Source: Adineta vaga (lineage: Eukaryota > Animalia > Rotifera). Taken from it: a DNA stretch of 64,000 bases. Location: positions 13,082,001 to 13,146,000 of the forward strand of contig CP075497.1 in NCBI GenBank assembly GCA_021613535.1. Direction: 5' to 3'. The translations under genes were made by a program, and so were the position numbers. A model generated the notes under the pieces. That model worked only from the letters and a program-made list of their open reading frames with translations. It searched no databases and was not told where the DNA came from. Position 1 is the first letter of the stretch. Each line of letters begins with the position of its first letter. Positions 2,424 to 45,800 of this stretch are shown here, one piece after another.

Positions 2424-3518
2424 ATGTCAGAGACACTGCACAGTGGAATTGAGTTCTTCTCCGTTGAACTATGGCGAGAAGTTTTTGATTATTTCAATTC
2501 AAATGATTTATGGTACTCATTTCGTGATTTGAATAAAAGAATTAATGAAATCATTGATCAGACAATGTTACATTTAGATTTTGCAAAGCATGAGAATTAT
2601 GATTATTATATGAAAAATATTTTACCATCAATAAATGGGGCTAATATTCGATCATTAAAATTACAAAACTTCAATGAAATAAAACATTTTTTCTCTATCT
2701 ATTCCCTTAATTCATTGATTCAACTTCGTTTACTATCATTAACTTTTATGAATTCTTTTAATGATAATTCATTTCAATTCTGGAATCAACTTTCATCTTT
2801 GAAATATTTACAATCATTGAAAATTATGTTTCGAGGCTATTCTGGGTGCGGTTATTGTATTGAAGAAAAGGAATATATTATTCGTTCGATATTTAATAAA
2901 GATTTTTGTCCCTTATTAAGATCTTTTAGTATCGAAGCTTGTAGTAGAAGAAGTTGGAAGTCCACAATTCCTTCGTTAATACCAACAACTAAAGCAACAC
3001 ATATGGAATATATGTCGATTGACTCGTTGGCTTTTATTGATTTAATTAAATTACTTCCTGCTCTACAAAATATTAAATCATTTCGCTCGGATCATGAATT
3101 AACTTATGATAATAAACAGCAGCAAAACATGACAATTCCAATGCCATTGCTGTGTAAGTGTATTCGACTGCATATACACTTATCAGAAGATATGACATTT
3201 GAACACATCGAATATTTATTAAAACATACACCAAATTTACAAGATTTATGTTTGCGGAGTTGGCATCATTTACTTAGTGCAAATAAATGGGAATCAATAC
3301 TATCAGTTCAATGTCCGAAATTGTTAAAACTTGAATTAATATGTACTGGACCCATTGGAGATGATTATTTTCATCAAGCATCAGATAATTTTCAACAAGA
3401 GTGTGCAATAATACCATTTTGGACTGAACGAAATGTTACAATTACAGATGATGAAGATCATTCGGCTCCTGATTATCGTTCTAATATTATAATTCGATTT
3501 AATATCGAAAAAAAGTGA
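2424..3518 (+). CDS. F-box/LRR protein (bdelloid-type)
   Basis: N-terminal F-box-like IEFFSVELWREVFDYFNSNDLWYSFRDLNKRINEII followed by LxxLxxLxL repeats. ATG at 2424 follows a ttttag acceptor; the end may continue via a GTGAGT donor near 3514. Confidence 0.8.
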   Translation: MSETLHSGIEFFSVELWREVFDYFNSNDLWYSFRDLNKRINEIIDQTMLHLDFAKHENYDYYMKNILPSINGANIRSLKLQNFNEIKHFFSIYSLNSLIQLRLLSLTFMNSFNDNSFQFWNQLSSLKYLQSLKIMFRGYSGCGYCIEEKEYIIRSIFNKDFCPLLRSFSIEACSRRSWKSTIPSLIPTTKATHMEYMSIDSLAFIDLIKLLPALQNIKSFRSDHELTYDNKQQQNMTIPMPLLCKCIRLHIHLSEDMTFEHIEYLLKHTPNLQDLCLRSWHHLLSANKWESILSVQCPKLLKLELICTGPIGDDYFHQASDNFQQECAIIPFWTERNVTITDDEDHSAPDYRSNIIIRFNIEKK

Positions 3519-12005: not shown

Positions 12006-14471
12006 ATGTATTCCAATGGAACGTGGAACGTAAACGTAGATAAATTGGTAAGAAGCGACTGTGTCCATCGAAGGTCGTTCATCTACCCCACTGCAGATAC
12101 CCATGGCGAACAATGCTCGTTACGAAGCTTTTCTCTCGTCGAGTTGAATTCCCACATCGACCAATCGAGCGAAGATTATTTGGATTTTACGACACAACTA
12201 CGATGGACTAACAGCACTTTAATCACGTTCACTACTGTTGACGAATGCATTGATTTTCTTGTTAAGAACAAAAGTGAACGGATCTTCGTTATTCTATCCG
12301 ATAAGCTCGGAGAAACGATAGTGCCTCGCATTCATGATCTAAATCAACTTGATTCGATATTTATTTTTGACAAAACTCAAACATCGCATCAAGAATGGAT
12401 AAAAAACTGGCAAAAAGTGAGAGGTGCACACTGCCAATTAACTTCAATTTGTAACTCTTTAATATCCATCATGCGGCAACGTAGCCAAAATGTTGTTCCT
12501 ATTAGTTTGGCATCGGCTGATATTGGATCGAAGACGAGTTTGGACGAACTTGATCATACCTTCATGTACACTCAATTACTGAAAGAAAGTTTATTAGATA
12601 TTGACCATGACAACACTGAATGCGTTCACAAGTTTGCTGACTATTGGAGACTTCAATGTCCGTATAACACATCTGAAATTGCTAAATTTGAAAAGGAATA
12701 TCCTCTTCACAGTTCGACTTGGTGGTATTCTAAAGCACCATTTCTTTTTGAGAAGATTAATGAAGCTTTACGTACTCTTGATGTCGATGTTACATTGAAA
12801 ATTGCTTTCTTTATGTGTCATCTCCATCGAAATATTCAACAGATTCACTTGGAACAGTCCAGTAAACATGAAAAATCATTTACAGTGTACCGTGGACAAG
12901 GTCTATCAATGGCAGACTTCGAAAAGTTGAGAAAAGTAAAAGGTGGACTGCTCTCATTCAATAATTTCTTGTCCACGAGCAAGGATGATGAAGTCGCGTT
13001 TATGTTCACTGAGAGCAATATAAACGGAACCGATTTAATTGGCATTCTCTTCAAAATCAACGTTAATTCGGCAGACTCATCGATTCCTTATGCTTTCCTA
13101 CGAAGTGGTCTCAGCGGTCATCTATCCGAAAAAGAAGTTCTTTTTTCGATGCATACTGTCTTTCGTATTGGTGAGATCGAACAAATTGGAGATAATAACC
13201 GGCTTTGGCGCGTCAATCTCACTGCGACTCATGACAGAGATCCGCAGCTTAGCGCTCTTACTGATCGATTGGAGGAAGAGACTCAAAGAGGATCGAAAGG
13301 ATGGTCTCGACTGGGCAAAGTGCTACTTAAACTTGGCGAAGCCCATAAAGCCGAAGAATTATACCAATTATTACTCAATGAAGAATCTAATGAAACCGAA
13401 AAAGCCGTTTTTTACAGTCTGATTGGATATTGTAAAGTAGACCAAGGAAAAGTGGGTGAAGCAATCAAATTTTACGAAAACGCAGTTGAAATTGGCGAGA
13501 AAAATCTCCATCCATATGATCACGCTTTGGCGATTTTTTTTAATAATCTGGCCTCGGCGTATGGAAGAATAAGCAAGCATTCCAAAGCACTCGCTCTATA
13601 TGAAAAAGCCCGGGAAATATATGGTAAGAAACCGGATGATAAAAATGAATTATTAGCAATAACTTATAATAATATGGCTTTCACTTACGATCGTATGGGC
13701 CAATACGAACAGGCTTTATTCTTTTATGAAGAAGACCTAAATATCAGCCAAAATATGCTTCCTTCAAACCATCCCGACTCGGCGATTACTTACGGTAATA
13801 TCTGCTTAGTATACAACAATCTGCATAAATATGCTGAAGCGCTCGACTCTATCAAAAAAGCACTTGAAATTCAGGAGAAGATTCTTCCATCAAATCATCC
13901 CGATTTAGCTACTAGCTACAACAACACTGGTTTCGTTTATGCTAGTTCAAAAAATTATTCAAAAGCACTTCCATTCTATGAAAAAGCTTTGGTAATTCGG
14001 GAAAAAATGAATCCGCCAAACTATTCCGATTTAGCCCAATCTTATAACAATATGGGAGACTATTACCACCATCATGAGAAAAATTATGATAAAGCACTTT
14101 CCTTTTATAAAAAAACACTTGAAATTCGACAAAGTGCTGATCCTCAACACCCACATGATTTATATATCTGTCATAATAACATTGGTCTAGTGTATACCGA
14201 CATGAATAAGCATTCTGAAGCACTTTCCTTGTTTGAAGAAGCAAAGAAATTTCTGAGGAAAACCGTTCGTGAAGGTCATCCTGATTATGCTATCTTATAC
14301 AGCAACATCGGAGGTACGCTGACAAGAATAGGTCATTATCGAGCAGCACTTTTACGTTACAACAAGGTATTAGAAATTCGAAAAAACATATTACCTGCAA
14401 ACGATCCCAAACTATTAATCTGCTATGCTAGAATTGCCATACTGTGTTACAAATTAACTAATCAGGGATAA
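12006..14471 (+). CDS. ADP-ribosyltransferase-TPR protein (receiver-like N-domain, R-S-E ART, kinesin-light-chain-type TPR array)
   Basis: VYRGQG, FNNFLSTS, SEKEVLF followed by about 9 TPRs (e.g. HPDLATSYNNTGFVY). Single open frame; true start uncertain. Confidence 0.9.
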   Translation: MYSNGTWNVNVDKLVRSDCVHRRSFIYPTADTHGEQCSLRSFSLVELNSHIDQSSEDYLDFTTQLRWTNSTLITFTTVDECIDFLVKNKSERIFVILSDKLGETIVPRIHDLNQLDSIFIFDKTQTSHQEWIKNWQKVRGAHCQLTSICNSLISIMRQRSQNVVPISLASADIGSKTSLDELDHTFMYTQLLKESLLDIDHDNTECVHKFADYWRLQCPYNTSEIAKFEKEYPLHSSTWWYSKAPFLFEKINEALRTLDVDVTLKIAFFMCHLHRNIQQIHLEQSSKHEKSFTVYRGQGLSMADFEKLRKVKGGLLSFNNFLSTSKDDEVAFMFTESNINGTDLIGILFKINVNSADSSIPYAFLRSGLSGHLSEKEVLFSMHTVFRIGEIEQIGDNNRLWRVNLTATHDRDPQLSALTDRLEEETQRGSKGWSRLGKVLLKLGEAHKAEELYQLLLNEESNETEKAVFYSLIGYCKVDQGKVGEAIKFYENAVEIGEKNLHPYDHALAIFFNNLASAYGRISKHSKALALYEKAREIYGKKPDDKNELLAITYNNMAFTYDRMGQYEQALFFYEEDLNISQNMLPSNHPDSAITYGNICLVYNNLHKYAEALDSIKKALEIQEKILPSNHPDLATSYNNTGFVYASSKNYSKALPFYEKALVIREKMNPPNYSDLAQSYNNMGDYYHHHEKNYDKALSFYKKTLEIRQSADPQHPHDLYICHNNIGLVYTDMNKHSEALSLFEEAKKFLRKTVREGHPDYAILYSNIGGTLTRIGHYRAALLRYNKVLEIRKNILPANDPKLLICYARIAILCYKLTNQG

Positions 14472-14791: not shown

Positions 14792-16828
14792 TTACCATTT
14801 TCCTTCATGGGTACTTTTATTTATGCGTAGTTGTATTTTTGGAGTGCGAAGATATGCACGACTGTGTTCGAATAGACAACCCCATGGTAACGGATATTTA
14901 GCGGTATCAACACCAATTGCTTGTGTCCATTTAGTTCTTCGATTGACTAACTTAAATTTATACGCATCGCAATCGATCGTTAATTCTAATATATCATTGA
15001 TTTCCCACAAGTCTTGATCAGACAGAAGTGGTGCACCAAATTTGATTTGAATGCGTGAAATGTCATTGTAGTCATGGATCATCTTCATGTAAAATTGAAG
15101 TGTTTTACTTTCACAAGATAATATTTGGAATTCAATTCGATGAACACCAGCTGAATATTTCAAACACGTGGCGCCATACTGCCGAGAACTCTCCCAGCTA
15201 ATGACTTTTCCATACTCTGATACTCTTCTGACATCATTATAATATGGTGCTCGTATCCCATTTTCATCACATCCAAACGCGACAAATCGTTCCTCGTTGT
15301 CTTCTGTTCCACATCGATGGCAATATTGTACTGTATCATGAAGATTATCTTCGATGTTTACAAGCTCTGTTCTTATTAACTTTCTGTCATAGTAGTGAAG
15401 AATACTAAAATTAGTTGGTAATTTGGAATATGTTTTGTTTGGATCTAAAGTGTCATTACGAAGGATAAATTTGACATTATCTTTCCTTGAATGCATAAGA
15501 TCAGTAAATTTCCTCATGAAAAGTCTCCACCTGGCATCATCATTGACTATTAAATGATCATTGATAACACCAATAAATAGATCTTGTTCTTTCTCGCCAT
15601 ATTTACAGATCATGAGACTCTCCGTAGTATGGCTATCAACTAAAATGCATCCACGATCTGATGCAATGCGAAGAAAATGAATTTGTTCGTTTTGAGGATA
15701 GCTTTCTTTGTACATTTGGACAAGTTTATCAAAAGAAGTATTGATTTGTTCAAGAAATGCCCTTTCCTGCATGTCATTACTGCGAACTTTCACCAAATTT
15801 TGGCTTAACATTTCGCGATACGCAACATGAGCATCAAGCAGCTCAGCATACCGTTTTTCGACGCTTTTACATGTTGCATCTGAAATGCAAACTGAAACAC
15901 CTTCGTATATTTCATAGTAATCAGCATATTTCTGTTGTATTTTAAGTAAATGATCCGCATTTGATTGAATTTTGAATAAAGTCCCTTGACTTACAAGCCA
16001 ACTGTCCAAACCATCGACAGATATTTTCAATTGACGTTTGAGATTGTTGATCGGATAAAGAATATATTCAATTGGCTTAGCATGTAAAACAATTTTTTCC
16101 ATGGATTTTGGCAGATCTTTAAAAAATGCTAAACTCTCGTCAACAGTTTGTGGTAGTTGATTGGTAAACTTGATATCGGTGTAGATTTTAACATGAAATG
16201 AATTCTTACTTATTGTCGACGTTTGTTTATATTCTGCACCGGCTTCAACCGAGCCGGACGAAAGAGCTTTCACTTCGGCTAGCATAACTTTCAATTTACC
16301 TTCGACTTCACATTTGTTTTCATTCTTTTCGACGCGCCTTTCGAAGCTTGCACTGACACAGAAACCATAAATAACACCGATAACGATATGCGTGGCTTCG
16401 TTCGGTTGTCGTTTAAATGTAATCAATTCGTTTAATTTCTTGTTGTTATTTAGAATGGCTTCTTTGAATTGTTTTGATCGGATTGTTTCACGGTAGAAAA
16501 TTGACGCTTGGACAATATGACTCGTTTTCGGGGATTCTGTTAAGAATTTGAACGAACCACTCGGTTTCGCCAGATCAGATAAAATACTCGCAGATAAATC
16601 CAGACCAATTTTAAATTTGTTAAATTTATCAGTCATCGTATCACGAAAACTATGCTCATAAACAGTGCTTGTGCAAGGCGAGGTGTCCAAGATATTGTCA
16701 TCTAATGCAACTCCAGTTTTTAAGCAGGAATGCATTAAAAACCGATCGCGTCGCATGTCATAATAAGAACCAATATCATGATTTGAATCGTCTAACGCTT
16801 GTCGATTTATATAATCGTTCGCTAACAT
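14792..16828 (-). CDS. Stonustoxin/verrucotoxin-like MACPF/CDC-type protein with C-terminal SPRY-like domain
   Basis: RQALD..IGSYYDMRRDRF, EATHIVIGVIYG, LPQTVDESLAFFKDLP and AKPIEYILYPI resemble the stonustoxin N-terminal motifs (ALG..LG.LYD.R.D, ATHVV..I.YG, P.T..EA......LP, A.P....L.PL). A helical region and a beta-rich YSAGVHRIEF..DILELTIDCD..PLPW domain follow. Coding region has no introns. Confidence 0.75.
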   Translation of the reverse strand: MLANDYINRQALDDSNHDIGSYYDMRRDRFLMHSCLKTGVALDDNILDTSPCTSTVYEHSFRDTMTDKFNKFKIGLDLSASILSDLAKPSGSFKFLTESPKTSHIVQASIFYRETIRSKQFKEAILNNNKKLNELITFKRQPNEATHIVIGVIYGFCVSASFERRVEKNENKCEVEGKLKVMLAEVKALSSGSVEAGAEYKQTSTISKNSFHVKIYTDIKFTNQLPQTVDESLAFFKDLPKSMEKIVLHAKPIEYILYPINNLKRQLKISVDGLDSWLVSQGTLFKIQSNADHLLKIQQKYADYYEIYEGVSVCISDATCKSVEKRYAELLDAHVAYREMLSQNLVKVRSNDMQERAFLEQINTSFDKLVQMYKESYPQNEQIHFLRIASDRGCILVDSHTTESLMICKYGEKEQDLFIGVINDHLIVNDDARWRLFMRKFTDLMHSRKDNVKFILRNDTLDPNKTYSKLPTNFSILHYYDRKLIRTELVNIEDNLHDTVQYCHRCGTEDNEERFVAFGCDENGIRAPYYNDVRRVSEYGKVISWESSRQYGATCLKYSAGVHRIEFQILSCESKTLQFYMKMIHDYNDISRIQIKFGAPLLSDQDLWEINDILELTIDCDAYKFKLVNRRTKWTQAIGVDTAKYPLPWGCLFEHSRAYLRTPKIQLRINKSTHEGKW

Positions 16829-23587: not shown

Positions 23588-25485
23588 TAATTCCATTTAA
23601 TCAGTTTTTTATTAGTTTTATTGGAAGTTTGGATAGCTGGGGTCGCATTGTAACCCATACATTAGAAAATATCGTCTTAGGTAGACCTAACTACAACACA
23701 ATTGTGCCATGTTTGAATCAGAGTTTTCAAAAGTGTGTAATATTAACGTGCAGTCATAATCGAAGTATCGCCAAGAAGGAAAGTGCAGATCTCAGACTTT
23801 CAGCTTTTCACTATGGTTTTCCGTATAGAAACACTGTTTCAGTATCTCAGGAACTTTGAGCAATACTGAGTAGGATGGTGCAGCGCTTATCCAATTGAAC
23901 ATTGCAGATGTGCGTAGTGGTGATGAAAAATTTGCAAATAGTTCGTGACTAGGCATGTGCGAAACTGGAGCTGGGACTGAAAAATAAAGTTTAACAGGAA
24001 TCGGAACCGGGACTCAGATATTTTACTTCGTAATATTAATAGTTTAGAAAGAAGGACATTTCTTAGTGTTGTTCGATTAGGCAACAATTCTTTCGCATCA
24101 ATCAGTTTACCAAAGTATTTACTAGTATTAAATATTTACCTGATAAGTTCCTCGAAACCTTAATTATGAGTAATATTAAATGGTCGTAAACCGAATATAA
24201 ACATTTCAGTAGTAGTATGATGAATTTTTTGTGTAAAAACGAAGTTAACCAGGTGTCACCTGAGAAATACCTTTAAATGATGAAGAAATACGTGGATGAG
24301 TTTGTATTGAAGGTTTTTTGTTGTTGAACATTTAGTTGAATGTTTTTTCATCACATTAGCTCCACCTGATGCATTCCATGATAAAACTTTTTGGCATTCA
24401 TTGCAGATATTACATTTCTGACGAGCATTATTGATATAAATTTGCCTAAAGTTATCTCAATATGCACTTTTTGTAGCAGAAAGTATCATAAAAGACAATG
24501 ATGCATCTTTTTTCGAACTAGTTGTCCGACTTCTAGCTGTAAGTTTTGACGATAAGGTGTTTTCGTGAGCTCCGTTTATTAATGAACAAGAACAAGAGAG
24601 AATAAGAAACACACGTATATAGATAAGATATAGAGAGAAGAGAGAGAAGAACTAGATGGCACACAATGTGCAAAATATGAAAGAGAACAAGATACACGCA
24701 CGTATATATACGTTTATGTACTGGATAATTCCTTCATATATGTGATGATACGAATAGAGAAAACTTCAATACTAGCTTATCAAATTGTTTTTTTTTTAAT
24801 TGAGTCAGACATTGAAAATGTATTGAATAAATAAAGTATCGGTTATTTGAATTACAATCGAAGAATTGAATTGAAAACATAGTAAAAATGATATAACATT
24901 AATTATCAGTTTGACCTGACTAGATTAAAACAAGTTTCTTCATAAATATCGCTATATAAGTCTCTAGATATCTCTTGCAGATAGTGCCAATTTAGTGTAT
25001 CTCTTTCGGTAATAACGTGGATGAACGTTTCCATAATATAAAACAAAGACTCATAAAGATATCATCAATGGGATCGGGACCAGGACCGAAAAAACTGGTG
25101 GCGAACATGTATAGTCTGGAGTGGAGATGAAATAACGCATAGCCGAAGTTGTCTACGTTCGGTATGCACGGTGGAATATGTTGCGACGATAGAATATAAA
25201 ACATTCCAACATGCTTATATCGATAGTCCCTGCCGTTTCCTAACAAGTGAAGTGTGATGAACAATAGCAGAAATTTCCCCTAGTACATTATAAATGACAT
25301 AAACTGTGTTGAACGACATTAGTAAATTATACGTTAAAAATATAATATTTAAACAAAACTATGATACATTTGTCGCTATTCATTGAATCAAGTTCCATCA
25401 GAAACCATCAACATAGATTGTCATTCTCAATCGTTACCGAGATCGTAAAACCAACTTCTGTAGTTAAAAGTATGTTTCTTTGTAG

Positions 25486-28400
25486 GGGCAAACATTCCCG
25501 GACGAATTTCTGTGCTATGGCAGAAACTGAAACATTTTCTTCGAAATTTCAATTTGTTTCCATCCATACCACCTTCAACAGATGCATATGAACTCCGTAC
25601 TCAAATAATATCAACAAGAGTATTCATTATTCTATTCACTTTATCATTAACAATTCTTGTCTTATACACTTCACTGCAACGAATTACAAAAACAATCTAT
25701 GTCGAAACACCAACACTTGATCAATACTCACAACTATATTCAACTTATTCACCTACACTATCATGTCCATGCACTCAAATATCAATCAATTATCAGAAGT
25801 TCATTCACATTCAATACAAGTTTCATCAAGTATGTGAGAGTTTTTTTATTACTGAAAACTGGATCTATTATATCGCTGCGCCTCGCGGAAGCACAGTATA
25901 TTTCACTGATTTTCAATGGACTGGCCCATTAGCATTTCAAGCTCTGAAGATGTTTTGTGAATTCACAAATAAAACCATCGATGATAGTTTGCATCGATTC
26001 TATTCGAATCAATATGTCACTTCATCAGTCACACCTTCACAAGTATTCACAAAACAAATCGAAACGTTAACTGAACAATTCAAATTATCAACAATAACCA
26101 GTATTCTGTTGTCTCTTTCTTTAATTCGAGAGACAACTCAAAGCAATGGTTTGTATTCCGGTGCAGGTACAAATTACTTATTTCTTATTATAAGCGGTAG
26201 TAAGCATGTTGCTGAGGCATCATTGTCTCACTCTAACTGCTCCTGTCGGTTTTCGTCGAAATGTGTTGAACAATCTTCATTTTATCAATATCCAGTCTAT
26301 GAGCCCATATTTTCTATTCCTGGGTTTTACACGGGATGTTATATTATTGAAGCACTACTGCAATCGACTCTCGAATGCTTTTACAATAAGAATTGTACCA
26401 ATGAATTAAAGAGATATCTTTATTCACCGCTCTTAACAAATGTTACAGTACTTGATTCATTATTACCAAGTCAATATTCACAAAACACGACTATTGAACA
26501 TCTTATGAATAATGCGATGATTGAAGAATGGAATTCAACATCACCGTTTAATAACTATTATAATGAATGTAAACCGAAAGAGTGTGTTTATACAATTGAA
26601 ACAAGAAATGATGTGACTTATATCGTGACGAAAGTAGTTGGAATCGTTGGTGGTTTAGTCACAATCTTGAAATTTGCTGTGGCAATGTTGATCAAGTTAA
26701 TAAGAAAGAAGAAAGAACGCTTACAAACAAACATACGTAAGTTAGGAATAAAAGAGTTTGTTCAATTTTTCGTGGAAGGAACATTGATCTTGATGACTAT
26801 GGTTTGAAGATGACACTAAGAAATTGTCGGCTTCTGATCTAGTTGTGAAAATGGGATATAAATACAGAAAAGAGTTTAGAAAAACAGTATAATTGTATGT
26901 ATATGTAAACGATATAGCTTATATATTGCCGATCAATTCGTCAAATCAATTAAAGTGCGCTTCACGCGTAAACTCAGAACTTGAAGCTGACTTACTCATG
27001 TAGATCTTATAATATTGTTCTCAGACCTACTGAGCCATATGAATTAAGTTTTCTCTCGAGAATACGATAAGTATAATCTCAAGTCGAAAGTGCTATTGCC
27101 AAAATAGAAGAAAAGTAGTCGATACCCGAAAATAAAATTGTCATAACAAGAAGATTTTATTCTGTTTTTGAGAGAAAACTTCTTGAAAAGTTTATTAGTT
27201 TCAAGAATTATGTCCTAAAATAGGGATGCGTAGGTGCGCTCCAATTTGGAGTTTACACACTGTGGAGTTCACGTTTTTGGATCAATCCGTCGCTCGTCTA
27301 CTCATCGCAATGAATGACACGAACAAATGGACTGAAATCTTGCAGGTTTACGACTTTGAAGAATAAAACAAACCATCATACAGCTAAAAGGAATTCTTTT
27401 CATTATACTTGATTCTATTGAGAGGTCGAACAGTTGTTCTCGGGATCAACTAAGAGGGTGAGGAACAGATCTAATTCCGTTTAGATGTGAACTATCAGAC
27501 TTCGTCTAAGTGTAGCACGCATTTCTATTTACTTTAATATTAACATTCCATTTCGCGAACAACTGTTCTAAACCTATTGTGACGAATTCAGATAACATCA
27601 CTTTAGAAAGACATTACTCTACAGGTAATCATAGAAAAAGAGCATTCATTCCAGCACTCGTTCAATGTTGATGCATAATGCTGCATATAAGTCAGCCCTA
27701 GTAGTACCGACCGTAGTCATTTTGCTCTCTCTAGTAGTAAATGTTACAGTATGATGAAACTTTGATCTATTCTATAGTTTTTAGGAACGAATTTAAGACG
27801 CGTTCGACTGTATGGTTCGGAGTGCGAGCGAATATAGGATATATGTGAGCCATGACAAAAGGAGTCCAACGATATCGCGATCGATGAATATGCAGAGATG
27901 ATGCGAGATTAACATCAACTTTCAAACTATAGAAGTCATTTTTCGATGCAATAGTCCATCCTATAGAAAGTCCTTTGTTGAGCTCATGTGGGACCACCCC
28001 CATACCACCCAAAACACAGGTTGGTATTAAAAGGGTTGAAATCGAAGTGATAGCTTACTTCTATCTGCACAAACCATTACAATTCGATCTAAGTTTATTG
28101 TTAGCAATTTTTTTCAAGGACTTACGCCTTGCCAACGGATTCGCCGCTTGTTTTTGAAATGCAAGTTGTATCTTATAACCTTTAACGTATTTCCATCAAT
28201 ACCATCTTCAACAGATGCATATGAGCTTCGTACTCAAATAATATCAACAAGAGTATTCATTATTCTATTCACTTTATCATTAACAATTCTTGTCTTATAC
28301 ACTTCACTGCAACGAATTACAAAAACAATCTATGTCGAAACACCAACACTTGATCAATACTCACAACTATATTCAACTTATTCACCTACACTATCATGTC

Positions 28401-31400
28401 CATGCACTCAAATATCAATCAATTATCAGAAGTTCATTCACATTCAATACAAGTTTCATCAAGTATGTGAGAGTTTTTTTATTACTGAAAACTGGATCTA
28501 TTATATCGTCCCGCCTCCTGAAAGCTACTTGTACACCACTGAATTTCGATTCACTGGTGCACCTGCATTTCAAGCTCTGAAGATGTTTTGTGAATTCACA
28601 AATAAAACCATCGATGATAGTTTGCATCGATTCTATTCGAATCAATATGTCACTTCATCAGTCACACCTTCACAAGTATTCACAAAACAAATCGAAACGT
28701 TAACTGAACAATTCAAATTATCAACAATAACCAGTATTCTGTTGTCTCTTTCTTTAATTCGAGAGACAACTCAAAGCAATGGTTTGTATTCCGGTGCAGG
28801 TACGAACTATGTACTGTATGCTAGAAGCGGTAGTGGGGCGGTTGAAACAAGAGAAGTAGCTTACTCTAACTGCTCCTGTCGGTTTTCGTCGAAATGTGTT
28901 ATAAGATCTTCAATTTCCGAGTATCCAGTGTTCGAAATCTCATTTTCGATTCCTGGATTTTACACGGGATGTTATATTATTGAAGCACTACTGCAATCGA
29001 CTCTCGAATGCTTTTACAATAAGAATTGTACCAATAAATTACAAAGTTATTTTGATTCACCGTCATTAATGAATGTTACAGTACTTGATTCATTATTACC
29101 AAGTCAATATTCACAAAACACGACTATTGAACATCTTATGAATAATGCGATGATCGAAGAATGGAATTCAACATCACCGTTTAATAACTATTATAATGAA
29201 TGTAAACCGAAAGAGTGTGTTTATACAATTGAAACAAGAAACGATGTGACTTATATCGTGACGAAAGTAGTTGGAATCGTTGGTGGTTTAGTCACAATCT
29301 TGAAATTTGCTGTGACACTGTTGATCAAGTTAATAAGAAAGAAAAAAAAGCAATCAAGAATACATCTGAGTAAGTAAACGTGAAAGAATCGAAAACAAAT
29401 GATATTTAATATCATCATCATCATCATGTCCCATAGGCTTAGCGTCCGTTGGGGCCCAACATTTTACGGGATCAGATTTTTCGACGCCTGTCGATCTTGC
29501 GCAAAGTGGAACAGTCCCTGTCCACTGCGTTGATACCACTCCGTTATGCCATTCAACCATTCTCTGCATGGACGCCCTCGCTTAGATTTGCCCTTCATTT
29601 TACCAAATACTAGGTGTTTGAATAATCTGCTGTCGTCCATTCTGCAGATGTGGTCAAACAACCTCAACTTTCTCTTCTTAATGGTGTCTATTATAGTCTC
29701 TTTTTTAGATACCCTTTTTCGGATATCTTCATTCCGTATCATATCTTGCCAATTTATTCGTAGAATTCGTCAGTAACATTTCATTTCAAAAGCCAGTAGT
29801 TTTTCCCGTCTGCTTCTTTTAGAGTCCATGTCTCTGATGCGTATAATAAGACGCTGAACACACATGTGTTTAGGATTCTAAGCTTGTTTTCTATCCTCAA
29901 TTTCTTGCTACTCCATATGTGTTTCAGAGAGGCCATTGCACCTGTCGCTTTTCCTATTCTTCTTTTTATTTCCTCTGAACAGTTATTGTCCCATGTTAGC
30001 AAGCTGCCTAGATATTCAAATTTTTCTACGTTTTCAATGGTATTTCCTGCTACCTGTATGTTGTAATCAATATTCCTGTCTCCAAATGCCATGGTTTTGG
30101 TTTTATTTATATTCAAGATCAGTCCAGCTTGTTCGGCAGCTGTTTTAGTTAGCTCTATTTGGCGTTGAAGTGAGCTAACATCTTCATCTATAAGGTCAAT
30201 ATCATCGGCGAATCTTAGGTTATTTATTAATGTTCTGTCTCACCTGGTCCATTACTCGCTCGAGATATGCGATGAAGAGAAGTGGTGACGGTGGGTCGCC
30301 TTGTCTAGTCCCTACATCTGTTCGAAACCACTCTCCATAATCTATACCAATGCGAACAGCTGACTGAGACTTTTCGTAAATATTTTGTAACAAGGTGACC
30401 ATCTTTACGTCGACACCATAAGATTTTAGCATAGCCCAAATAATTTTAGGGTTGATCGTATCGAATGCTTTTTGAAAATCTATGAAGCAGTTGTATATTT
30501 TCTTGCCCTGTCTTTTTGCTTTTTCAACTAATAGTCTAAGCGTTAATATTTGATGTACAGTACTCCTGTCTTTTCTGAATCCTGCCTGCTCTTCGGATAG
30601 ATACGGGTCCAGTTGATTTTTCAATCTGTTTAGTAGTACTATTAGTAGTACTTTTCCTGTATGATTAATAAGAGAGATCGTTCGGTAGTTTGAGCAATTG
30701 CTGAGGTCTCCTTTCTTTGGAATAGGAACCAATATAGATTTGCCCCATTCTTCTGGAATTGTACCTTCATGCCATGCTTTGTTACAGAGTTTATGTATTT
30801 CGCGTGATAGCAGTTCGCCCCCAGCTTGTAGCATTTCCGCTGTTATGCTGTCTGATCCTGGACTCTTATTTCTTTTTAATGAATTTATCGCTGCTTGTAC
30901 TTCTGAGTACAAGATATCCTGAGGACCTTCATTTTCAGGAGGTGCAATGTCTTCAAGTTCTTTCACCATCCCGTCCCCACCTCCAGGATCTTTATACAGA
31001 CCGCTACAATACTGTGTCCACCTTTGTTTAATTTCGTCATTTGACTGTAACATTGTCCTCTCTTGACTTCGTATGACATTTAACCGAGGTACAAATTCTT
31101 TACTTAGCATTTTTATGAGACCATATGCTTCTTTTGTGTTTCCAATGCTTAGACCTTTTTAGCTTTTCTTTTTGTTGATACAGTTGCCTCTACTGTGGTT
31201 TTGATAGCCTGCTCTATCTTTGTGGCATGTTCTTCTAGGCTACACGTTGGCTCTATCTCTTTGATTTGTTTCGTTAGAGCAGCGCTGTATGATTGTTTTA
31301 CTTTCTCATCTCTCAATCGGTTCACATCAACTCTGTCATACTTTTGTGATTTGTTGTGCAATTTCGTGAGTTTCAAGTTGATATTGCACAACACTAATGA

Positions 31401-34345
31401 ATGATCTGAATTTATGTCTGCACTCTGAAATGTTCGACAGTTTGTGACCGAGGTCTTCCATCTTTGCTGGATGAGTATCAAGTTAATCATATTCTTATGA
31501 ATGCCATCTAGTGACGCCCAAGTCCATTTTCGATTTGATTTATGTTCAAACCGTGTATTACTGAAATTTTAAATGGTGTTGCATCTAATCTTGCCGAAGT
31601 TATTTGTGAGCTATTTGGATTGTAGCCTATTAACGGCTTTTTCGCTTGAATGCTTAATAAAAACCACACACCCTTCGTATGTGAGGTCTCTTCTCCTGAC
31701 CAAATGAAATTTCCTTTCGGTGTTTCACCTTTTCCTGTCCATCGGACTTCTGAAATACCATTTATATCGTATCTAAATCGTTTCATTCCATTTCTGAGCA
31801 GTTCTAGCTTGCCTGAAGGCCATAAAGTCTGCACATTCCATGTTCCTACTGTCAGAATAGTTTTGGCAAGTTTTAGTTTTTGCGTGTTTTTCGTCGTATA
31901 TGAATTCTTCCCAGTCGCCAATTTTTCGACTCTGCCCTGTTTACTCGACAGAGGACGCGAACCTTGTTTTGCCGGGCATCATCCGAGCCGGCATGAATTA
32001 TCTCCAATAACGTTCATGGTTGGTTTCTTTCGTCTTGTTCGTTTTACAGACGGTAGTATCTGCACCCTTCCGTCAAACACTCGTCCTTCATCCGAACTTG
32101 TAACCGGCACGGAGCCCGCTGATCAGCGGTCTCCATGATGGAGTTGATATTTAATATATCAGTCTTTAATGTAAGTCTATTGGTCTTTCACTCGTAGCAT
32201 ATACATACAGTTTCTTTAACATCTATTAGTAAATTTAACTAAAATAAATCAATTTGTGTGAATGACATTTGTTTAAGCCGCCATGGTTGAGTGGTTACGC
32301 TGTTTGGCACGTAACTACAAGGTACTGTGTTCAAACCTCGATAACATCATCCATGGAATGATCTTGGACAAGTCACTAATGGCTAAGTTGTCTAAAATGA
32401 CTCGTAACATATGAGTTATTCGTACTGACTACACGCTTAGTCACTATGTCGGACGAAAGAGAGTGCAGATACCACCGCCCGTAAAAATAAAAAGATAGTA
32501 GAACCCGGCTGCATGTGGAAAAAAATAAATGATAACCGCGGCCGGTCCCTACGGGCGTTTAGCCTATGGGACGTTATTATTATTATATTACATTTGTTTG
32601 CATTGTTAGTCCACAATTTTTTATTATATCGGCTTATCATACGTTGATATGAGCAGTTGCAACCATGTTTATTGAGATTTTGTAAAAATAATAAATCGTT
32701 CAAAGTAATTGCATACATTTATTATATATAAGGTTCCTACACTGTGCTAAGGGAATCATCTGCCAACATATTCATGGACGTTCGTTCAGCATAAATGCAA
32801 ATGGACGACTGCTGTGTGATATTACACCAGTTTCCATGCTATTATTCTCTGCCATGACAAAATACAATCGATTTTTACTTGCATGATTGAGGAATGAAAA
32901 TAGACGGAATAGCCTATCTCACTGAATATTACTCAACTATACTCATCTAAACTTAGAGACTCATTTCGTGTACGAAGATAGCTGTCAAATGATTCATATA
33001 TCCAGAACTGACTGATTGAATAAGAGCACTTTGACGACATATGAAAGGTAAAGAGATATTTCAATCATCCTTTTTTTTAAGAAAGAAACAATGAGAAACG
33101 AATTGCTGAACTATGGCAAAAACTGAAACATTTTCTTCGAAATTTCAATTTGTTTCCATCCGTATCACCTTCAACAGATGCATATGAGCTTCGCACTCAA
33201 ATAATATCAACAAGAGTATTCATTATTCTATTCACTTTATCATTGAAAATTCTTGTCTTATACACTTCACTGGAACGAATTACAAAAACAATCTATGTCG
33301 AAACACCAACACTTGATCAATACTCACAACTATATTCAACTTATTCACCTACACTATCATGTCCATGCACTCAAATATCAATCAATTATCAGAAGTTCAT
33401 TCACATTCAATACAAGTTTCATCAAGTTTGTAAGAGTTTTTTATTACTGACAACTGGATCTATTATATCGTCGCGCCTCGCGGAAGCTCTGTATTTCGCG
33501 AAGATTTTCGAAACACCGGTCCATTAGCATTTCAAGCTCTGAAGATGTTTTGTGAATTCACAAATAAAACCATCGATGATAGTTTGCATCGATTCTATTC
33601 GAATCAATATGTCACTTCATCAGTCACACCTTCACAAGTATTCACAAAACAAATCGAAACGTTAACTGAACAATTCAAATTATCAACAATAACCAGTATT
33701 CTATTGTCTCTTTCTTTAATTCGAGAGACAACTCAAAGCAATAGTTTGTATTCCGGTGCAGGTACAAATTACTTGTTATTAGCGAAGACGGGTAGTGTCT
33801 CTTTGATTCATTCTCCAATGTCTTATTATGGATGTTCGTGTAGTATTTCGTCGAAATGTGTTTTACAATCTTCAATTTACGAATATCCAGTGTCTAAACC
33901 CGTATTTTCTATTCCTGGGTTTTACACGGGATGTTATATTATTGAAGCACTACTACGATAGACTCTCGAATGCTTTTACAATAAGAATTGTACCAATAAA
34001 TTACAAAGTTATTTTGATTCACCGTCAATAATGAATGTTACAGTACTTGATTCATTATTACCAAGTCAATATTCACAAAACACGACTATTGAACATCTTA
34101 TGAATAATGGGATGATTGAAGAATGGAATTCAACATCACCGTTTAATAACTATTATAACGAATGTAAACCGAAGGAGTGTGTTTATACAATTGAAACAAG
34201 GAATGATGTGACTTATATCGTGACGGAAGTAGTTGGAATCGTTGGTGGTTTAGTAACAGTTTTGAAATTGTTTGTGCCACGATTAGTTAAATTCATTATG
34301 ACTTGTATTAAGAAATGGAAAGGAAGGGTGGCTCCGCATAATTAA
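25486..34345 (+). CDS. Three-module membrane protein gene (each module TM-Cys-rich ectodomain-TM); third module disrupted
   Basis: Exons 25486-26736, 28119-29369 and 33082-34345 are joined by phase-1 GTAAGT...AG introns that keep frame. Motifs LSCPC, CSC...C, GCY..EALLQSTLEC, ECKPKECVY, GIVGGL. Module 3 has a 1-nt deletion near 33440 and TCG>TAG at 33959. First exon not located. Confidence 0.8.
29413..32144 (-). mobile_element. RTE-type non-LTR retrotransposon, TSD-bounded and decayed
   Basis: APE endonuclease (LTVGTWNVQTL, GISEVRW, SDH) and RT (NYRTISL, FIDFQKAFD, QGDPPSPLLF, RFADD). (GAT)n 3' tail; 13-bp TSD TGATATTTAATAT at 29400-29412 and 32145-32157. Multiple frameshifts; antisense within an intron. 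Confidence 0.92.
32275..32589 (+). mobile_element. tRNA-derived SINE with RTE-derived body and tail
   Basis: A box TGGTTGAGTGG and B box GTTCAAACC. The 3' end GGTCCCTACGGGCGTTTAGCCTATGGGAC+(TTA)n matches the LINE 3' end. 10-bp TSD ACATTTGTTT at 32265-32274 and 32590-32599. Confidence 0.85.
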
Positions 34346-39876: not shown

Positions 39877-42800
39877 ATGAATTTTAAAGCTCTACTTCAT
39901 TGGCTCTATGAATGGTTATCTACTTACAATCTTTTTATACCTGAAACAGATGTGAATGATGATGATCAAGAAGATTCAGTAGCTGTTGTTCGACACCAAA
40001 GATATACTACTTGGTTATACGTTCTTCTCCTTTTGAGTAAGTAAAACGTACATTTGTTTTTGGAAATTAGTATATATAGAAGAAATAAAAATAAAAATAT
40101 CTGATGATTAATCAAGCAAAAAATGATTCTATGATGATTTCAATGAATTTGACCTGTTTTTCTTCTTTTAGTATCACTCTACGTTATTTTCTTCATTTCT
40201 TTCACAAGACCTTATCCTCGAACGATTATTGTTACAGATGTGACACCATCTATCTTCAATGAATTACGTCTGAAATATCCCACAACTCTTTCATGTCCAT
40301 GTTCAAAAACTACAATACCATTTCAAACTTTTGTTTCTAATTCTTTTACATTTCATCCTATTTGTTCGAGTGTTTTCGTTGATCAACAATGGATCGAAGG
40401 ACTGTATTTAATCAATGCAAGTGACTTTGGAGCATTAGACTTTCGTACGACGGCTCATTCTCAGGTAAATGAATAGATGCTATTGAAGAAATCTCTATTT
40501 TCACTAGAAAGAAGTTTTAATTACAACTGGATCAAAAGTTTTAAATGCCTGTCATCTGTGACTACATCCAAAGGAATTTATAATTAGAATTGTACAAAAA
40601 AGATTAATTTATGAAAGACTTCACTAAAATTGTTTTCAGTGATAAATCTATGAGTTTTTATTAGCTCCAAATTGATAAGATATAGAACGTATACTTTTAT
40701 ATCAAGTGTATTGTAAGAATTAATATGTTTACTTTATGGAGACCCCTCCCTATATAACCCCAGACATTGGGAGAAATCGTATTTTTGAATTTCGAACTGA
40801 ACTTTTACCTATAGAGAGATCTGAATTGAACTATAGCTTTCGGAAGAAAACTGAGAAGTTTTTAACACGGTCTTTTTAAGATATAAACTTGTACGATATA
40901 AATCCTTTTTTTTTGGTTTTTATCTGCACCACATGTAATGTCTACAGACAAAAAAATAATTGAAATCAGAAGAAGAAGATGTCGAATGTTTATGTACACC
41001 GATCTCGAATCGTGTCGTCTATGATAAATTGATGAGAGCTCAACTGTCATATCGTCCTAAACCGCAATTGAATCTAACCTTTAACTTTCTATCTAAAATA
41101 TTTTCAGCTTTTCTACAAAAACATCATAACTTATAAGCAAAGAAGACAGATACTAAGCAAATTAAGAACTATCATATGGCTTTTTTTTATAAACTGCTCA
41201 ATTTATTCATTAGAAATGAGATCATTAAGAGTTTGATGGTCATAGTAAAGTAAGTCATTGAGAATTAGAGTTATACAAAAATGTATAGAATTTTCCCGTA
41301 AATCATTGTGATTCGCCGCGTATTCTACTTTAATATTTCTAATTCGAAATAATTCTTTTATTTGACTTTATTTTGATTTAGTTCAAACTTTTATCAAATC
41401 TTTGTTCATATTCTAAAGATACAATATCTCAAGTACAAAATGATCTCAACAATACAGAACTTGTCAGTGTTGATCTTATGTCTGAAGAAAATATTCGAAA
41501 TGAAGTCGATGCCATTGTTGAACTATTGAGGGACAATGTTGCCTCTCATATTCGTTCCTCCTTAACCTATTTAAAAATAATCAATCAAGCAAATTACTTA
41601 ATCACCTCTCTCAATACAAAAGCAATCATTTCATATGATAGTTCTAAACGTGAAATTATCGGTCAATGGCTAATTAATTCTGCTATTTCATTCGAAACAG
41701 GATGGGACACGCCTGCTTGTATCGACATAGTTAAAGTTCCAATTAAAAATGCTACTTTTCTATCACCCATATATTTTAGCCTACTTTCGTTTGAACCTCC
41801 TTTTCTTGCTCCTATTACAATTGTGAACGGGTTCTTTGCAAGTTGCACCACACTTGAAGCACTTCTTCCAAGTACTCTCGATTGTTTATATGATATTAAT
41901 TGTATTGAATTATTGATCGAATACTTTCCATCACTCAGTCAAGTATGTATCTAGATTGATGTATTCCAACGTCAAAAACGACGTCTTAAACGATGTGAAA
42001 CGGCTAGAAATTTCTACTGTGATTGCAGTGGGTGGTGATCGTAAGCCGTGCGTAAATTGAACGATACAGTCTATGTACGACCGTTTACGGTTACTTCACG
42101 GCGTATACAGGTGCTGTTCACTAGTGACGACCTGCGTGAGAGATAGTTTTGATCACGATCATTAATGTTACACTATTTATAGAGTAGAGCTGTGTAGTTT
42201 TCTGAATATCTGACTCGGTAATCATAATTGAGACCAAAAGAAAAAATGCCGGAAGCAAAAATGAGTGATGATGAAGTAGATTTCTACTTCCATACATTTT
42301 CATTTCAACATATTTGTTTTCCGATATTTTTATTCTCGTGTTTACTCCTTACCTCGATTGTGTAAATGATAAGAGAAAAATTCTTATCTAGATGCAATTG
42401 AATTGGACCAATTCTGTTCTACCTGCAAAACAAGAAAATCTATCCTTGGAAGATCATTTACTTAAATTTTTCGTTCAAGAATCGTTAATCAAAATAAACT
42501 ATTTCGATTACTTTAATCAATGTGCTCCCGTATCGCTGCTGTACACTGTCAAGCACAAATCAACTTTTCATATGGACTTACTATGTTAATTAGTTTTTAT
42601 GGTAGTCTCATTATTGTACTTCGTTTTATTACGCCAATAATAACGAATCTCATATTGAAGTTGAAATTCTATTTGACAAACAATCATTTGAATAGAGGTA
42701 ATTTGTTTTGAATATTATCAAAATAAAGTCATTCTAATTTGTAATTTATGTAGGATTTACTGAGAATTGTGGAATATTTTTACACAAATTTCGGTCGTGG

Positions 42801-45800
42801 ATAATAAAGTTGAATTTATTCAAAGAAAAAGAAGCTCGAACAGAAAATGATATAAAAAAACAAAAGATTATTACATATGTCTATTTGATCCTGAACCGGT
42901 ATGTTTACTTCTTTTTTGGTCACTGAAACCTACATCCAAGATAGGTTTTTCGTGGACTTTCTGTTAAAAAAAGATTTTAAATTATGTTATGAGCGATTTG
43001 AGTTGCAGTTCAATAAGATTTCGATTCAAGAAAAAGGGGACTTTGCTCCTACCTTAATCCTTTTCTATGATCTTAAATTCTTAGTTATCATAGATATTCT
43101 AATTTGGAATAGTCATTCAGTTAAAGACACCATTGAATTTTGTAAACCGCAGTTTCTTTTCTTTGTATTACTAGGTGCCATGATTATTGTTCTTCTCTTC
43201 ACTTCTCAAAGTAGTGAAACGACTATGATAACAATAGAAAAACCTTCGTTTACTATGTACAAAGAATTGCAAGCGTCATATTCGAAAACGTTGACATGTC
43301 CCTGTTCTAGCATTAAAATACTTCATCATACATTCATTTCGTTGACTCCAAGATTACATGAAGTGTGTACAAGTGATTTTGTTAGTGATCGTTGGATTTC
43401 AATCTTGAACAAAGTCAAATCAACTCGAATAGCTGCAGACTGGCGTAGTAACGCTTTTTCACAGTTTCAGTTGTTGTCAAGTATTTGTCAACTAGCTAAT
43501 CAAACGATCGAAAATGCTATTACTCACTTTATCAATCAATCCTTCATCAGTTCAAGTGTACTCAATGAAATTGATTTTGATATTCAATTAAATTCAACTC
43601 TCAAACAACTCTATCAATCAACAATCATCTATTTTCGTCTACTGACTGACACAGCACTACTTTTTTTAAAAGTCGATCAGCCGTATGCCGTAATACCACG
43701 AAAGAATACTGAGAATAGCATTAATTTTAATCCAAATCTTGTTGAAAGTATCGTCACGAATGAAATGAACAACGAAACATTAGTAGAGGTATGTCTATTT
43801 TTCAGATGATAAAGAGGGGGAGTTGTTAGGCCACAAAACTCATTTGTCAACCGACTAAAAATGATTATTCTCAAAATTGAACATGAATGCTCGGATTCGG
43901 TGTATATCTATTCACATCCTCAAATTGTTTTAGGCTATGAAGACCTAAAAGGAAGTTTCGTAAATACGATACATCTTTATATTATACAAATAATCGAAGA
44001 AAAATTCGAAAGAAATTAATTTACAGTTTGTAGATTACAATACTACGGATATTATGTGAATATTTCTTAGTATACAACTACCAAGTATTATACTGAGTAT
44101 TCAATCACTGGAATAGATAGAAAAGTCCGTCTGTTGTGATCAAAAAATTACAGAGGAAGCATTGCACCCTCATACCCCGCCCCTCCGCGGTTACGCCACT
44201 CTAGTTCTACATGACAAAAGTGATTTTTTTACTATTCATTGATACACAAACATAGTTTTTTGCTTTGTTTTTTAGTTGGGTTTTCGTTTTACTAACAAAT
44301 ACGATCAATTCCGCATCAATCATTTGCGTTTGTGCTACAAATCCCAATTGTCATAGTGCAGTTGCTATTTACGATGTTTCTCCTGACTATGAAAGTCCAA
44401 TAATCAACATCGATTTCATAGTACCTGGCTGGAATGCAGGTTGTTTTGTTACTGATTTTCTTTCGTTCTCAACACTTGAATGTTTCTATTCGTATTCAAC
44501 TTGTTTATCAACTCTCAATTATCACATAAAAGAAATATACTTTAAAACTGAGCCAAATCCATCATGGTTTGATGTTCGCCCTCTCGTTTACAATCGAATG
44601 TTAAGTCATTTTCCTCCAAACACAACAATTGCAAAGATAATTAAAGATATGATGGTTGAAACATGGAATCCATCGTCTTCATACAATCATTATTATAAAG
44701 CATGTGCACCAAGTTACTGTACTTATTCTCGTGTAATTCGTACAAACGGTGTTATCGATGTGTTTTTAAAACTGATTTCTACGATCGGTGGGATTTCTGT
44801 CTCCTTACGTTTTATCACGCCTAAACTGATCGAATTTGTTGATGCTTTATCGAAGTTTAAGTTTAGACGACGACGACGACAACAACAACAACAACAAGGT
44901 AATTCTAAATATGTTAACAGTATCTTTCAAGAGAAGATTTTACAGTAAAATTAAGCTATAAAATACTGGCAACTCAATGAAAATGATCAAAATTTTGAAC
45001 ATCTCAGTTGAATATCATCATAGATAAAAATAGATCTTCCTATTTCTTATTTATTTGACAAGCATTTACTTCATAAGAATAAAATTTATCGAGTTTTTTA
45101 TTTTTTGTGTACAGTTCGTTTAGGATTGTACGACAGATTGAAAATGATTGTACGGCGTTTGACCACGTTGATGTATACCACTGTCGTTAATTTAAACATC
45201 TTCCTTCTGCGAGATTTTCGAAGTAATATTGATCGAATGACAGCTAATCGACTTGGTCAGTGGGCTACTCGTCTGTACATCGTTTTGTTCACCATCGGTT
45301 TTGCTATTCTCGCATTATATACCACAATTCATCCTCGACTTCTAACGAAAAATTTTGATAAACCGTCTCTCAATCGATATAATCGTCTTGTACATGTTTA
45401 TAAAGATCAATTGGAATGTCCATGTTCACGGATTGCACCTACACACAATAAATATGTTGACATTCAACCAATATTTCATGAGGTAAGAAATTATTATATT
45501 GAGGATCCGACCTCGGAGTCTAAATACTTCCTGAATATTTTCAAGCGAAGTTTCCTCTAAATTTTATTTTGTTTTTCCATGTAAACTATATGTTATAGAA
45601 GAACACATTGAACGCAGTAACATCCAAAAACATACTTTCTATTCGATCAGACCGACGTTTGTTTTCGATTTCTTTTTCTTTTTTCTTGATTATAGATTTG
45701 TTCCAGTCCATTTGCTTCAGATGAATGGAGACAAAATGTCACAATTAATCTTATTCCGGACTTATCTCTTTACGATTTATACGACTATCGCCGTTTTCTC

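Follow-up and report, generated by a model that had tools for sequence, protein, structure and literature searches.

We studied an array of three similar membrane-protein modules in Adineta vaga, a bdelloid rotifer. The analysed DNA, called the window below, is 64,000 nucleotides (nt) long and corresponds to positions 13,082,001–13,146,000 of the 13.89-Mb contig C6 (CP075497.1), about 0.75 Mb from the end of this contig. The window is AT-rich, with a GC content of ~31%. All three modules are on its plus strand: m1 at 25486–26736, m2 at 28119–29369 and m3 at 33082–34345. The open frame of m1 extends over 25512–26807 and that of m2 over 28148–29377; m3 falls into three open pieces (33150–33527, 33545–33961 and 34031–34345). 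We propose, with a probability of about 65%, that the three stretches are consecutive exons of one gene and that their common scaffold was homogenised by repeated gene conversion between old duplicates. According to the structural model, each module is predicted to consist of a short cytoplasmic head, a transmembrane (TM) helix, a cysteine-rich ectodomain of ~310 residues, a second TM helix and a basic cytoplasmic tail. The tails are of two types. In type A, a phase-1 GTAAG donor comes after a basic stretch, and type B is a C/W-containing tail that ends in a stop codon and has no donor. The differences between the modules sit in four short patches (P1–P4), in the head and in the tail. The features are listed below. 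The topology of m1 was taken from the AlphaFold (AF2) model of its sister module; a slash marks the exon boundary.

25486..26736, plus strand: module and exon m1; 1251 nt, phase 1-1, open frame; head, first TM helix (TM1), ectodomain of ~310 amino acids (aa), second TM helix (TM2) and type-A tail.
Splice sites of m1, plus strand: acceptor TTGTAG/GG, 29 nt before the conserved head; donor ATAC/GTAAGT at 26737, phase 1.
25608..25676, plus strand: predicted TM1 of m1, module residues ~32-54; long hydrophobic helix 24-54 in the AF2 model.
26622..26702, plus strand: predicted TM2 of m1, residues ~370-396; helix 367-405 in the AF2 model; invariant G376, G379 and G380.
25875..25931 (m1), 28508-28564 (m2) and 33470-33526 (m3), plus strand: patch 1, modelled as coil before the first long ectodomain helix; 16-23 nt differences per 57 nt between modules, family entropy 2.79 bits.
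26178..26252 (m1), 28811-28885 (m2) and 33773-33847 (m3), plus strand: patch 2, beta-hairpin region up to a conserved C-x-C; 26-41 differences per 75 nt, family entropy 2.84 bits.
26268..26309 (m1), 28901-28942 (m2) and 33863-33904 (m3), plus strand: patch 3, turn of the next beta-hairpin; 10-17 differences per 42 nt, family entropy 2.79 bits.
26403..26438 (m1), 29036-29071 (m2) and 33998-34033 (m3), plus strand: patch 4; m2 and m3 differ by 1 nt, m1 differs from either by 11-12.
26737..28118, plus strand: putative intron 1; 1382 nt, phase-1 donor and acceptor, unlike the other flanks.
28119..29369, plus strand: module and exon m2; 1251 nt, phase 1-1, open frame, type-A tail; donor CTGA/GTAAGT at 29370.
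29370..33081, plus strand: putative intron 2; 3712 nt, containing a decayed LINE-type retroelement (LINE, long interspersed nuclear element).
29464..31921, minus strand: non-LTR retrotransposon (LTR, long terminal repeat), decayed and broken over several frames; Pfam RVT_1 1.2e-22, DUF6451 3e-11.
33082..34345, plus strand: module and exon m3; terminal module, type-B tail with its own stop, degenerate.

The initial annotation had called the modules exons, and the splice signals bear this out: all three have a phase-1 AG acceptor, and m1 and m2 have phase-1 GTAAGT donors. We compared this splice grammar with that of the modules of ten other arrays in the same genome. In 13 other modules a pyrimidine-rich AG acceptor stands exactly 29 nt before the aligned start, always in phase 1. 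The window modules carry an AG at the equivalent spots (25485/6, 28118/9 and 33081/2), also in phase 1. Since m1 and m2 each measure exactly 1251 nt from acceptor to donor, these exons are symmetric and can be joined without a change of frame. Two other arrays show donor-to-acceptor distances that correspond to introns of only 61 and ~85 nt with an in-frame join. Only terminal modules of an array turned out to carry the type-B tail. The order of tails is A, A, B in the window and in three other arrays, and A, B in two. A relative, P0124 (1235 aa), carries three complete modules in a single uninterrupted open reading frame (ORF) of 3708 nt on a metagenomic contig with a GC content of 29%. Thus, three-module proteins exist independently of the predicted splicing. 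From the splice grammar and the relatives we infer that serial splicing would yield a six-TM protein with three ectodomains.

The same data bear on whether the modules could be three separate tandem genes, with a promoter and a tiny 5' exon apiece, among which ordinary interlocus conversion takes place. Long spacers of 1.4 and 3.7 kb are in line with such genes, as are an in-frame TAA two codons past the donor of m2 and an m1 frame that continues for only 20 codons past its donor. Single-module relatives with their own ATG also exist (P0036, P0038). However, none of the three heads contains an in-frame ATG, and the spacer between m1 and m2 holds no in-phase ATG leader exon. Separate genes also fit poorly with acceptors and donors whose matching phases join in frame, with a stop-bearing type-B tail that is restricted to the final module, both here and in five other arrays, and with relatives that have three modules per protein, one of them in a continuous ORF. 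We regard separate genes as unlikely. Symmetric exons of equal length could instead be alternatives, mutually exclusive or skippable, with one or two of them used per transcript as in Dscam or protocadherin genes. Any subset of phase 1-1 exons would splice in frame, and the diversity is concentrated in loops, as such exon choice would lead one to expect. But relatives that encode all three modules in one ORF leave no room for a choice, most annotated relatives carry two or three modules serially, and the terminal tail is present only on the last module. Exon choice is, in our estimate, highly improbable.

The divergence between the modules is very uneven. We split the 409 aligned codons into a framework of 293 codons, patches P1–P4 of 19, 25, 14 and 12 codons, and head and tail. 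The DNA identity is 91–92% over whole modules and 88–97% in 300-nt direct repeats. The differences are clustered, with a variance-to-mean ratio of 5.8–9.1 per 33-nt bin. The two longest stretches without a difference between m1 and m2 measure 280 and 239 nt, lengths reached in 0 of 10,000 permutations (mean permuted maximum ~60 nt). By the Nei-Gojobori method, the framework has a silent divergence (dS) of 0.05–0.09 and a replacement divergence (dN) of 0–0.012, and dN/dS was not computed for it. For P1–P3, dS is 0.57–1.0 and dN is 0.46–0.57, with dN/dS of 0.90, 0.71 and 0.57 for the three module pairs. The clustering, the identical runs and the low framework dS confirm the earlier description of modules that are nearly identical in DNA, including synonymous sites, and differ densely in discrete patches. 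The peptide strings given there for patches 1–3 and the sharing of NKLQSYFDSPS are all present in the in-frame translations. Those of m3 can be read only by stepping over a frameshift, and this break in m3 had been missed.

Silent-site divergence in the patches is 4–10 times that in the framework. Multiple hits per codon can inflate dS, and silent differences were therefore recounted only for codons at which both copies encode the same residue. At these codons, 14–25% silent differences were found in the patches versus 3–6% in the framework (P = 0.02 to 0.0002). Since the higher divergence of the patches extends to their silent sites, they are not simply fast at the protein level but older or unconverted. 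The kinship of the modules changes from segment to segment (chi-square 116, 18 degrees of freedom, P = 2e-16), which agrees with the mosaic sharing reported in the initial annotation. The closest pair is m1 and m3 in the head and in P1, m1 and m2 in P2 and in the tail, and m2 and m3 in P4. We compared the 1.2-kb flanks on each side of every module and found no mutual similarity, and the introns are thus unrelated, as had been claimed. Genome-wide searches covered 100.8 Mb in six contigs. They revealed no outside donor for patches 2 and 3 in the whole genome; the patch 2–3 sequences have no further copy there. In 75 family members taken from other sources, variability peaks in the patches (entropy of 2.8 bits versus 0.9–1.4), where small indels also occur. 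In the models they sit in coil or hairpin-turn regions with lower confidence.

Repeated conversion between old duplicate exons can account jointly for the unrelated flanks, for long stretches of identity that extend to silent sites, for the greater age of the silent divergence in the patches, and for the segment mosaic. A conversion-homogenised scaffold had already been suggested in the initial annotation, and the unrelated introns and the significant mosaic support it. The mechanism would be as follows. The exons would be old duplicates whose introns, heads, tails and loop patches have diverged deeply. Repeated gene conversion in short tracts between the exons would homogenise the structurally constrained scaffold together with its silent sites. 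The four loop segments, which are the least constrained family-wide, would remain different. These islands may persist through selection for non-identical ectodomains, or because a mismatch of 30–50% blocks heteroduplex extension.

Another explanation of the same pattern is that the modules are recent duplicates (dS ~0.05), and that the patches diverged fast under strong positive selection or through locally targeted mutation. In the patches dN and dS are both high and their ratio is near 1 (0.57–0.90), as expected from untargeted local hypermutation; the patches are loops, and no outside donor for their sequence exists. However, recent duplication should leave introns that can be aligned, and none of them align. 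Sister pairs that differ from segment to segment are beyond the reach of point mutation, and P4, head and tail are each common to a different pair. Other arrays have identical whole patches beside a diverged framework. To our knowledge, there is no germline mechanism of targeted mutation of this kind in animals, which also counts against this explanation. We consider fast patches in recent duplicates very unlikely.

Repeats of more than 90% identity are hard to polish, and the frameshift of m3 lies in a homopolymer. Near-identity could thus be an artefact of assembly or polishing, and the initial annotation had itself named assembly collapse among the things that would overturn its view. Two short-read runs of 2013, which are independent of the window assembly, gave contigs that we placed on 24400–29900. 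Their depth is ~72-fold at the unique flanks and 217–266, about three times as much, in contigs of the shared framework alone. A single 1584-nt contig from 2013 bridges the entire m1–m2 spacer into both modules. In the whole genome, no copy beyond m1–m3 exceeds 75% identity. Together, the threefold framework depth and the lack of further copies mean that the three copies are real. The near-identity is real and is not an assembly collapse; the second lesion of m3, a TAG codon, is not a homopolymer error either. An artefact is extremely unlikely. Two of the 2013 contigs (runs X2/X3) pass at 26179 from the shared framework into a sequence similar to patch 2 of m3, with about 3 of 30 bases differing from m3 of the window. 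This variant may be a divergent allele of m3 or may belong to a fourth module on the other haplotype. The retrotransposon at 29464–31921 has a read depth of 4–8 times that of the unique flanks and many variants; it is thus a member of a multi-copy family.

Gene conversion between old exons can also be considered in other arrays of the genome. Module pairs within an array are 51–86% identical, and modules of different arrays are 45–50% identical to m1. A pair of neighbouring modules on contig 5 shows 100% identity over ~390 nt from the exon start to patch 1 and then diverges sharply. In five other arrays (contigs 1, 3 and 5), P1 and P2, and often P3 and P4, are the most diverged segments, with dN/dS of 0.6–1.0. 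In Adineta steineri P0001, adjacent modules share a near-identical first framework block and have a divergent patch 1. To judge from these arrays, the scaffold-and-patch process appears to be general in the family. In some pairs the patch itself is identical (P3 on contig 1, P1 on contig 3), so the patches are not absolutely protected. The window is more orderly than the other arrays, with 4 of 4 patches unconverted and 5 of 5 blocks converted, and this leans slightly towards selection.

Several results weigh against one serially spliced gene homogenised by conversion. None of the runs on record as RNA contains the locus, so the splice junctions have not been seen. We did not find an ATG-bearing exon 1. 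Enumeration of in-phase ATG-to-donor stretches gave only weak candidates at 24166–24232, and tblastx against seven other arrays revealed no conserved upstream exon. The putative introns of 1.4 and 3.7 kb are far longer than the 61–500 nt found in other arrays. Since m3 is broken, an intact three-module product is impossible from this haplotype. The GC content at third codon positions (GC3) is 0.25–0.26 in the homogenised parts versus 0.29–0.34 in the patches; there is no rise, and the signature of biased conversion is absent. Finally, to homogenise five framework blocks and yet leave all four patches different, either selection or several short tracts that arose independently would be required.

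We considered spliced-leader trans-splicing at the acceptor and set it aside, because no in-frame ATG follows. A low-depth contig of run X1, which we guess to be RNA and which bears another organism label, matches m1 perfectly over 25491–25675 (~186 nt) and starts 5 nt past the predicted acceptor. The same run also yields a piece of the m1–m2 spacer (27521–27771, minus strand), and the contig is therefore no evidence of splicing.

Strong purifying selection has acted on m1 and m2 since their last homogenisation, as their frameworks differ by 9 silent and 0 replacement changes (P = 1e-6 versus neutrality). All 8 framework replacement differences fall on the m3 lineage, including a Lys in TM1. 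Module m3 carries a 1-nt deletion (T7 to T6 at 33437–33442) that shifts the frame, and a TAG at 33959–33961 where m1 and m2 have TCG. Module m3 is a recently decayed terminal exon. It is conceivable from the reading frames that a two-module product is made by read-through into the stop that follows the donor of m2. In P1–P3, the proportions of replacement and silent differences (pN and pS) do not differ (Fisher P 0.11–0.86), and three sequences give little power for detecting site-specific selection. The initial annotation had proposed diversified ligand-binding surfaces, as in a variable immune or chemosensory receptor, and had itself taken patch dN/dS at or below 1 as speaking against them. 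The values found are 0.57–0.90, never significantly above 1; by that measure they count against the proposal, which keeps the rank of a hypothesis.

All searches and folds were run exon by exon. The AlphaFold model built from 77 family members has a mean confidence (predicted local distance difference test, pLDDT) of 88.4. It shows a helix at residues 24–54, a mixed alpha/beta ectodomain at 55–366 that includes two long antiparallel helices, and a helix at 367–405. The ectodomain folded alone reached a pLDDT of 92 and a predicted template modelling score (pTM) of 0.86. Among the 77 sequences, eight cysteine positions never vary, and at four others cysteine is conserved to 90% or more. The middle domain contains several N-x-S/T sites, consistent with an extracellular or lumenal position, and a putatively glycosylated ectodomain fits these motifs. 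With P1 ahead of the first long helix and P2 behind the second helix of the antiparallel pair, the two should, according to the model, lie at the same end of the helix hairpin; P3 would be the next hairpin turn. Complex prediction for the ectodomains of m1 and m2 gave a score of 0.07, which is no verdict either way on binding.

We did not find a known domain or fold for the module. A Pfam scan of m1 and m2 gave no family even at E <= 1. Foldseek against the PDB, with the whole module and with the ectodomain alone, gave no match at E <= 0.001; the best E was 2.6, and ASIC2a appeared only at E = 6.4 with a TM-score of 0.11. VIA-align of the ectodomain alone against 48,161 chains gave Z values of at most 4.5. 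With the whole model, VIA-align matched nothing but the TM helix pair (Z up to 7.7 over ~75 residues). In the ESM Atlas, shape and feature searches led to rotifer clusters alone (410, 592 and 957 residues). A lead to the ciliate Y80K_N (ESM Atlas TM-score 0.30, feature score 0.78) was weak; the Pfam scan gives it no support, and we dropped it.

Relatives of the module are numerous. A word-based protein search found 246 of them (best E = 5e-204), with 45–58% identity over 94–100% of the module. The ectodomain alignment, used as a profile in an exhaustive search, yielded 3332 cluster representatives at E <= 1e-3, and the best of these mostly have 1200–1280 residues and three matched stretches. 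In both searches, the named relatives are all bdelloid, from Adineta or Rotaria. When modules covering at least 60% of the family profile were counted, 68 of 146 proteins had three and 69 of 146 had two. A literature search found no description of this module family. Judged by sequence, the modules belong to a very large unnamed family of membrane proteins, with named members in bdelloids only and with neither a Pfam domain nor a solved fold. The window array most resembles the three-module members of this family, such as P0122 of Adineta ricciae (CAF1323976.1, 1261 aa). It shares with them the TM–ectodomain–TM order, 12 conserved cysteines, the head motif, internal type-A and terminal type-B tails, and probably three modules per gene. 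However, the window modules are 80–85% identical to each other, and those inside annotated proteins of other species are typically 20–33% identical, with a maximum of 66%. The introns of kilobase size between the modules and the broken third module also set the window apart.

A conserved scaffold with short variable loops among tandem paralogues is known from the V segments of immunoglobulins (Ig) and of T-cell receptors (TCR) and from the major histocompatibility complex (MHC), and gene conversion shuffles such families. The window modules are similar to them in having a scaffold and short loops that bear most of the differences. Unlike them, the window modules have no Ig or MHC fold, their loop dN/dS is not above 1, and there is no signal of somatic rearrangement. 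The DEG/ENaC/ASIC channels and P2X receptors are trimers whose subunits have both termini inside the cell, two TM helices and a large disulphide-rich ectodomain. The predicted topology of the module is the same as that of their subunits, and three modules in one chain would be the covalent equivalent of a trimer. A relationship to ASIC/ENaC (Pfam ASC) or P2X was ruled out, since there was no Pfam hit at E <= 1, no Foldseek match at E <= 0.001 and no ectodomain Z above 4.5.

Regional gene conversion has been described for the variable exons of clustered protocadherins, namely fugu Pcdh2 (PMC1852091; Noonan et al. 2004, as far as it is cited there). As in the window, large tandem exons encode an ectodomain and a membrane span, and one part of them is homogenised by conversion at silent sites while another part is diverse (PMC1852091). 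Unlike the window exons, which have acceptors and are probably used serially, those of protocadherins serve as alternative first exons, each under a promoter of its own, and are spliced singly to constant exons. They have one converted 3' block, in contrast to five blocks and four interspersed islands in the window, and their GC3 is raised in the converted parts (PMC1852091), which is not the case in the window. No cadherin domain was found in the Pfam scan of m1 and m2, and the modules are not protocadherins. By analogy, conversion among protocadherin variable exons seems the closest process known to us. Regional concerted evolution with escaping islands is known in protocadherin, MHC and Ig clusters. 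What would be new in A. vaga is that it acts between exons inside one gene.

The setting is a rotifer-only family with thousands of members and no annotation, Pfam model or solved fold. If selection keeps the islands apart, this family would become a candidate for a variable recognition repertoire, in animals whose long evolution has gone on without conventional sex and is shaped to a major extent by gene conversion. If mismatch alone blocks conversion, scaffold and loops could be decoupled without selection, and this would offer a null model against which claims of 'hypervariable' receptors can be set. Annotation of these genes could take the splice grammar as a rule, with its symmetric phase-1 module exons and its internal and terminal tail types. 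A more far-reaching idea, which is speculative and in our view doubtful, is that bdelloids possess a very large, lineage-specific set of surface receptors which have a new fold and are covalent pseudo-trimers. In these, conversion would keep the scaffold and selection would keep the loops different, giving three non-identical binding sites. If true, this would be germline-encoded recognition by a framework with hypervariable loops, serving immunity, chemosensation or self-recognition, in an ancient asexual animal.

A second, much more divergent gene of the same family (30–53% identity) lies on the plus strand at 39877–48361. It has three modules, each spread over two or more frames. It is followed by an FG-GAP repeat region at 47285–48400, and the whole is colinear with the 1922-aa P0210 of Adineta ricciae. 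The long relatives P0139 and P0184 also end in FG-GAP repeats, and P0214 does not. No FG-GAP repeats were found beside the other m1-like arrays examined. Elsewhere in the window we noted a leucine-rich repeat (LRR)-like ORF at 2343–3518, ORFs with ADP-ribosyltransferase (ART) and TPR domains at 8117–9235 and 12006–14471, NHL repeats at 9945–10709, and stonustoxin (SNTX)-like MACPF proteins at 14792–16828 (minus strand) and 50430–52478. The neighbourhood is thus rich in expanded bdelloid families (ART-TPR, NHL, MACPF/SNTX-like, FG-GAP and LRR), and its bearing on an immune or chemosensory role is circumstantial.

Many arrays of the family (loci L004–L030 on contigs C1, C3, C4, C5 and C6) lie within 0.3–2.5 Mb of contig ends. 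Taken as a listing without statistics, their positions fit the dynamic subtelomeric regions described for A. vaga (PMC8494291). Examples are arrays at 0.31 Mb on C6, at 0.34 and 0.55 Mb on C5, and at 0.41 Mb and 15.11 of 15.22 Mb on C4.

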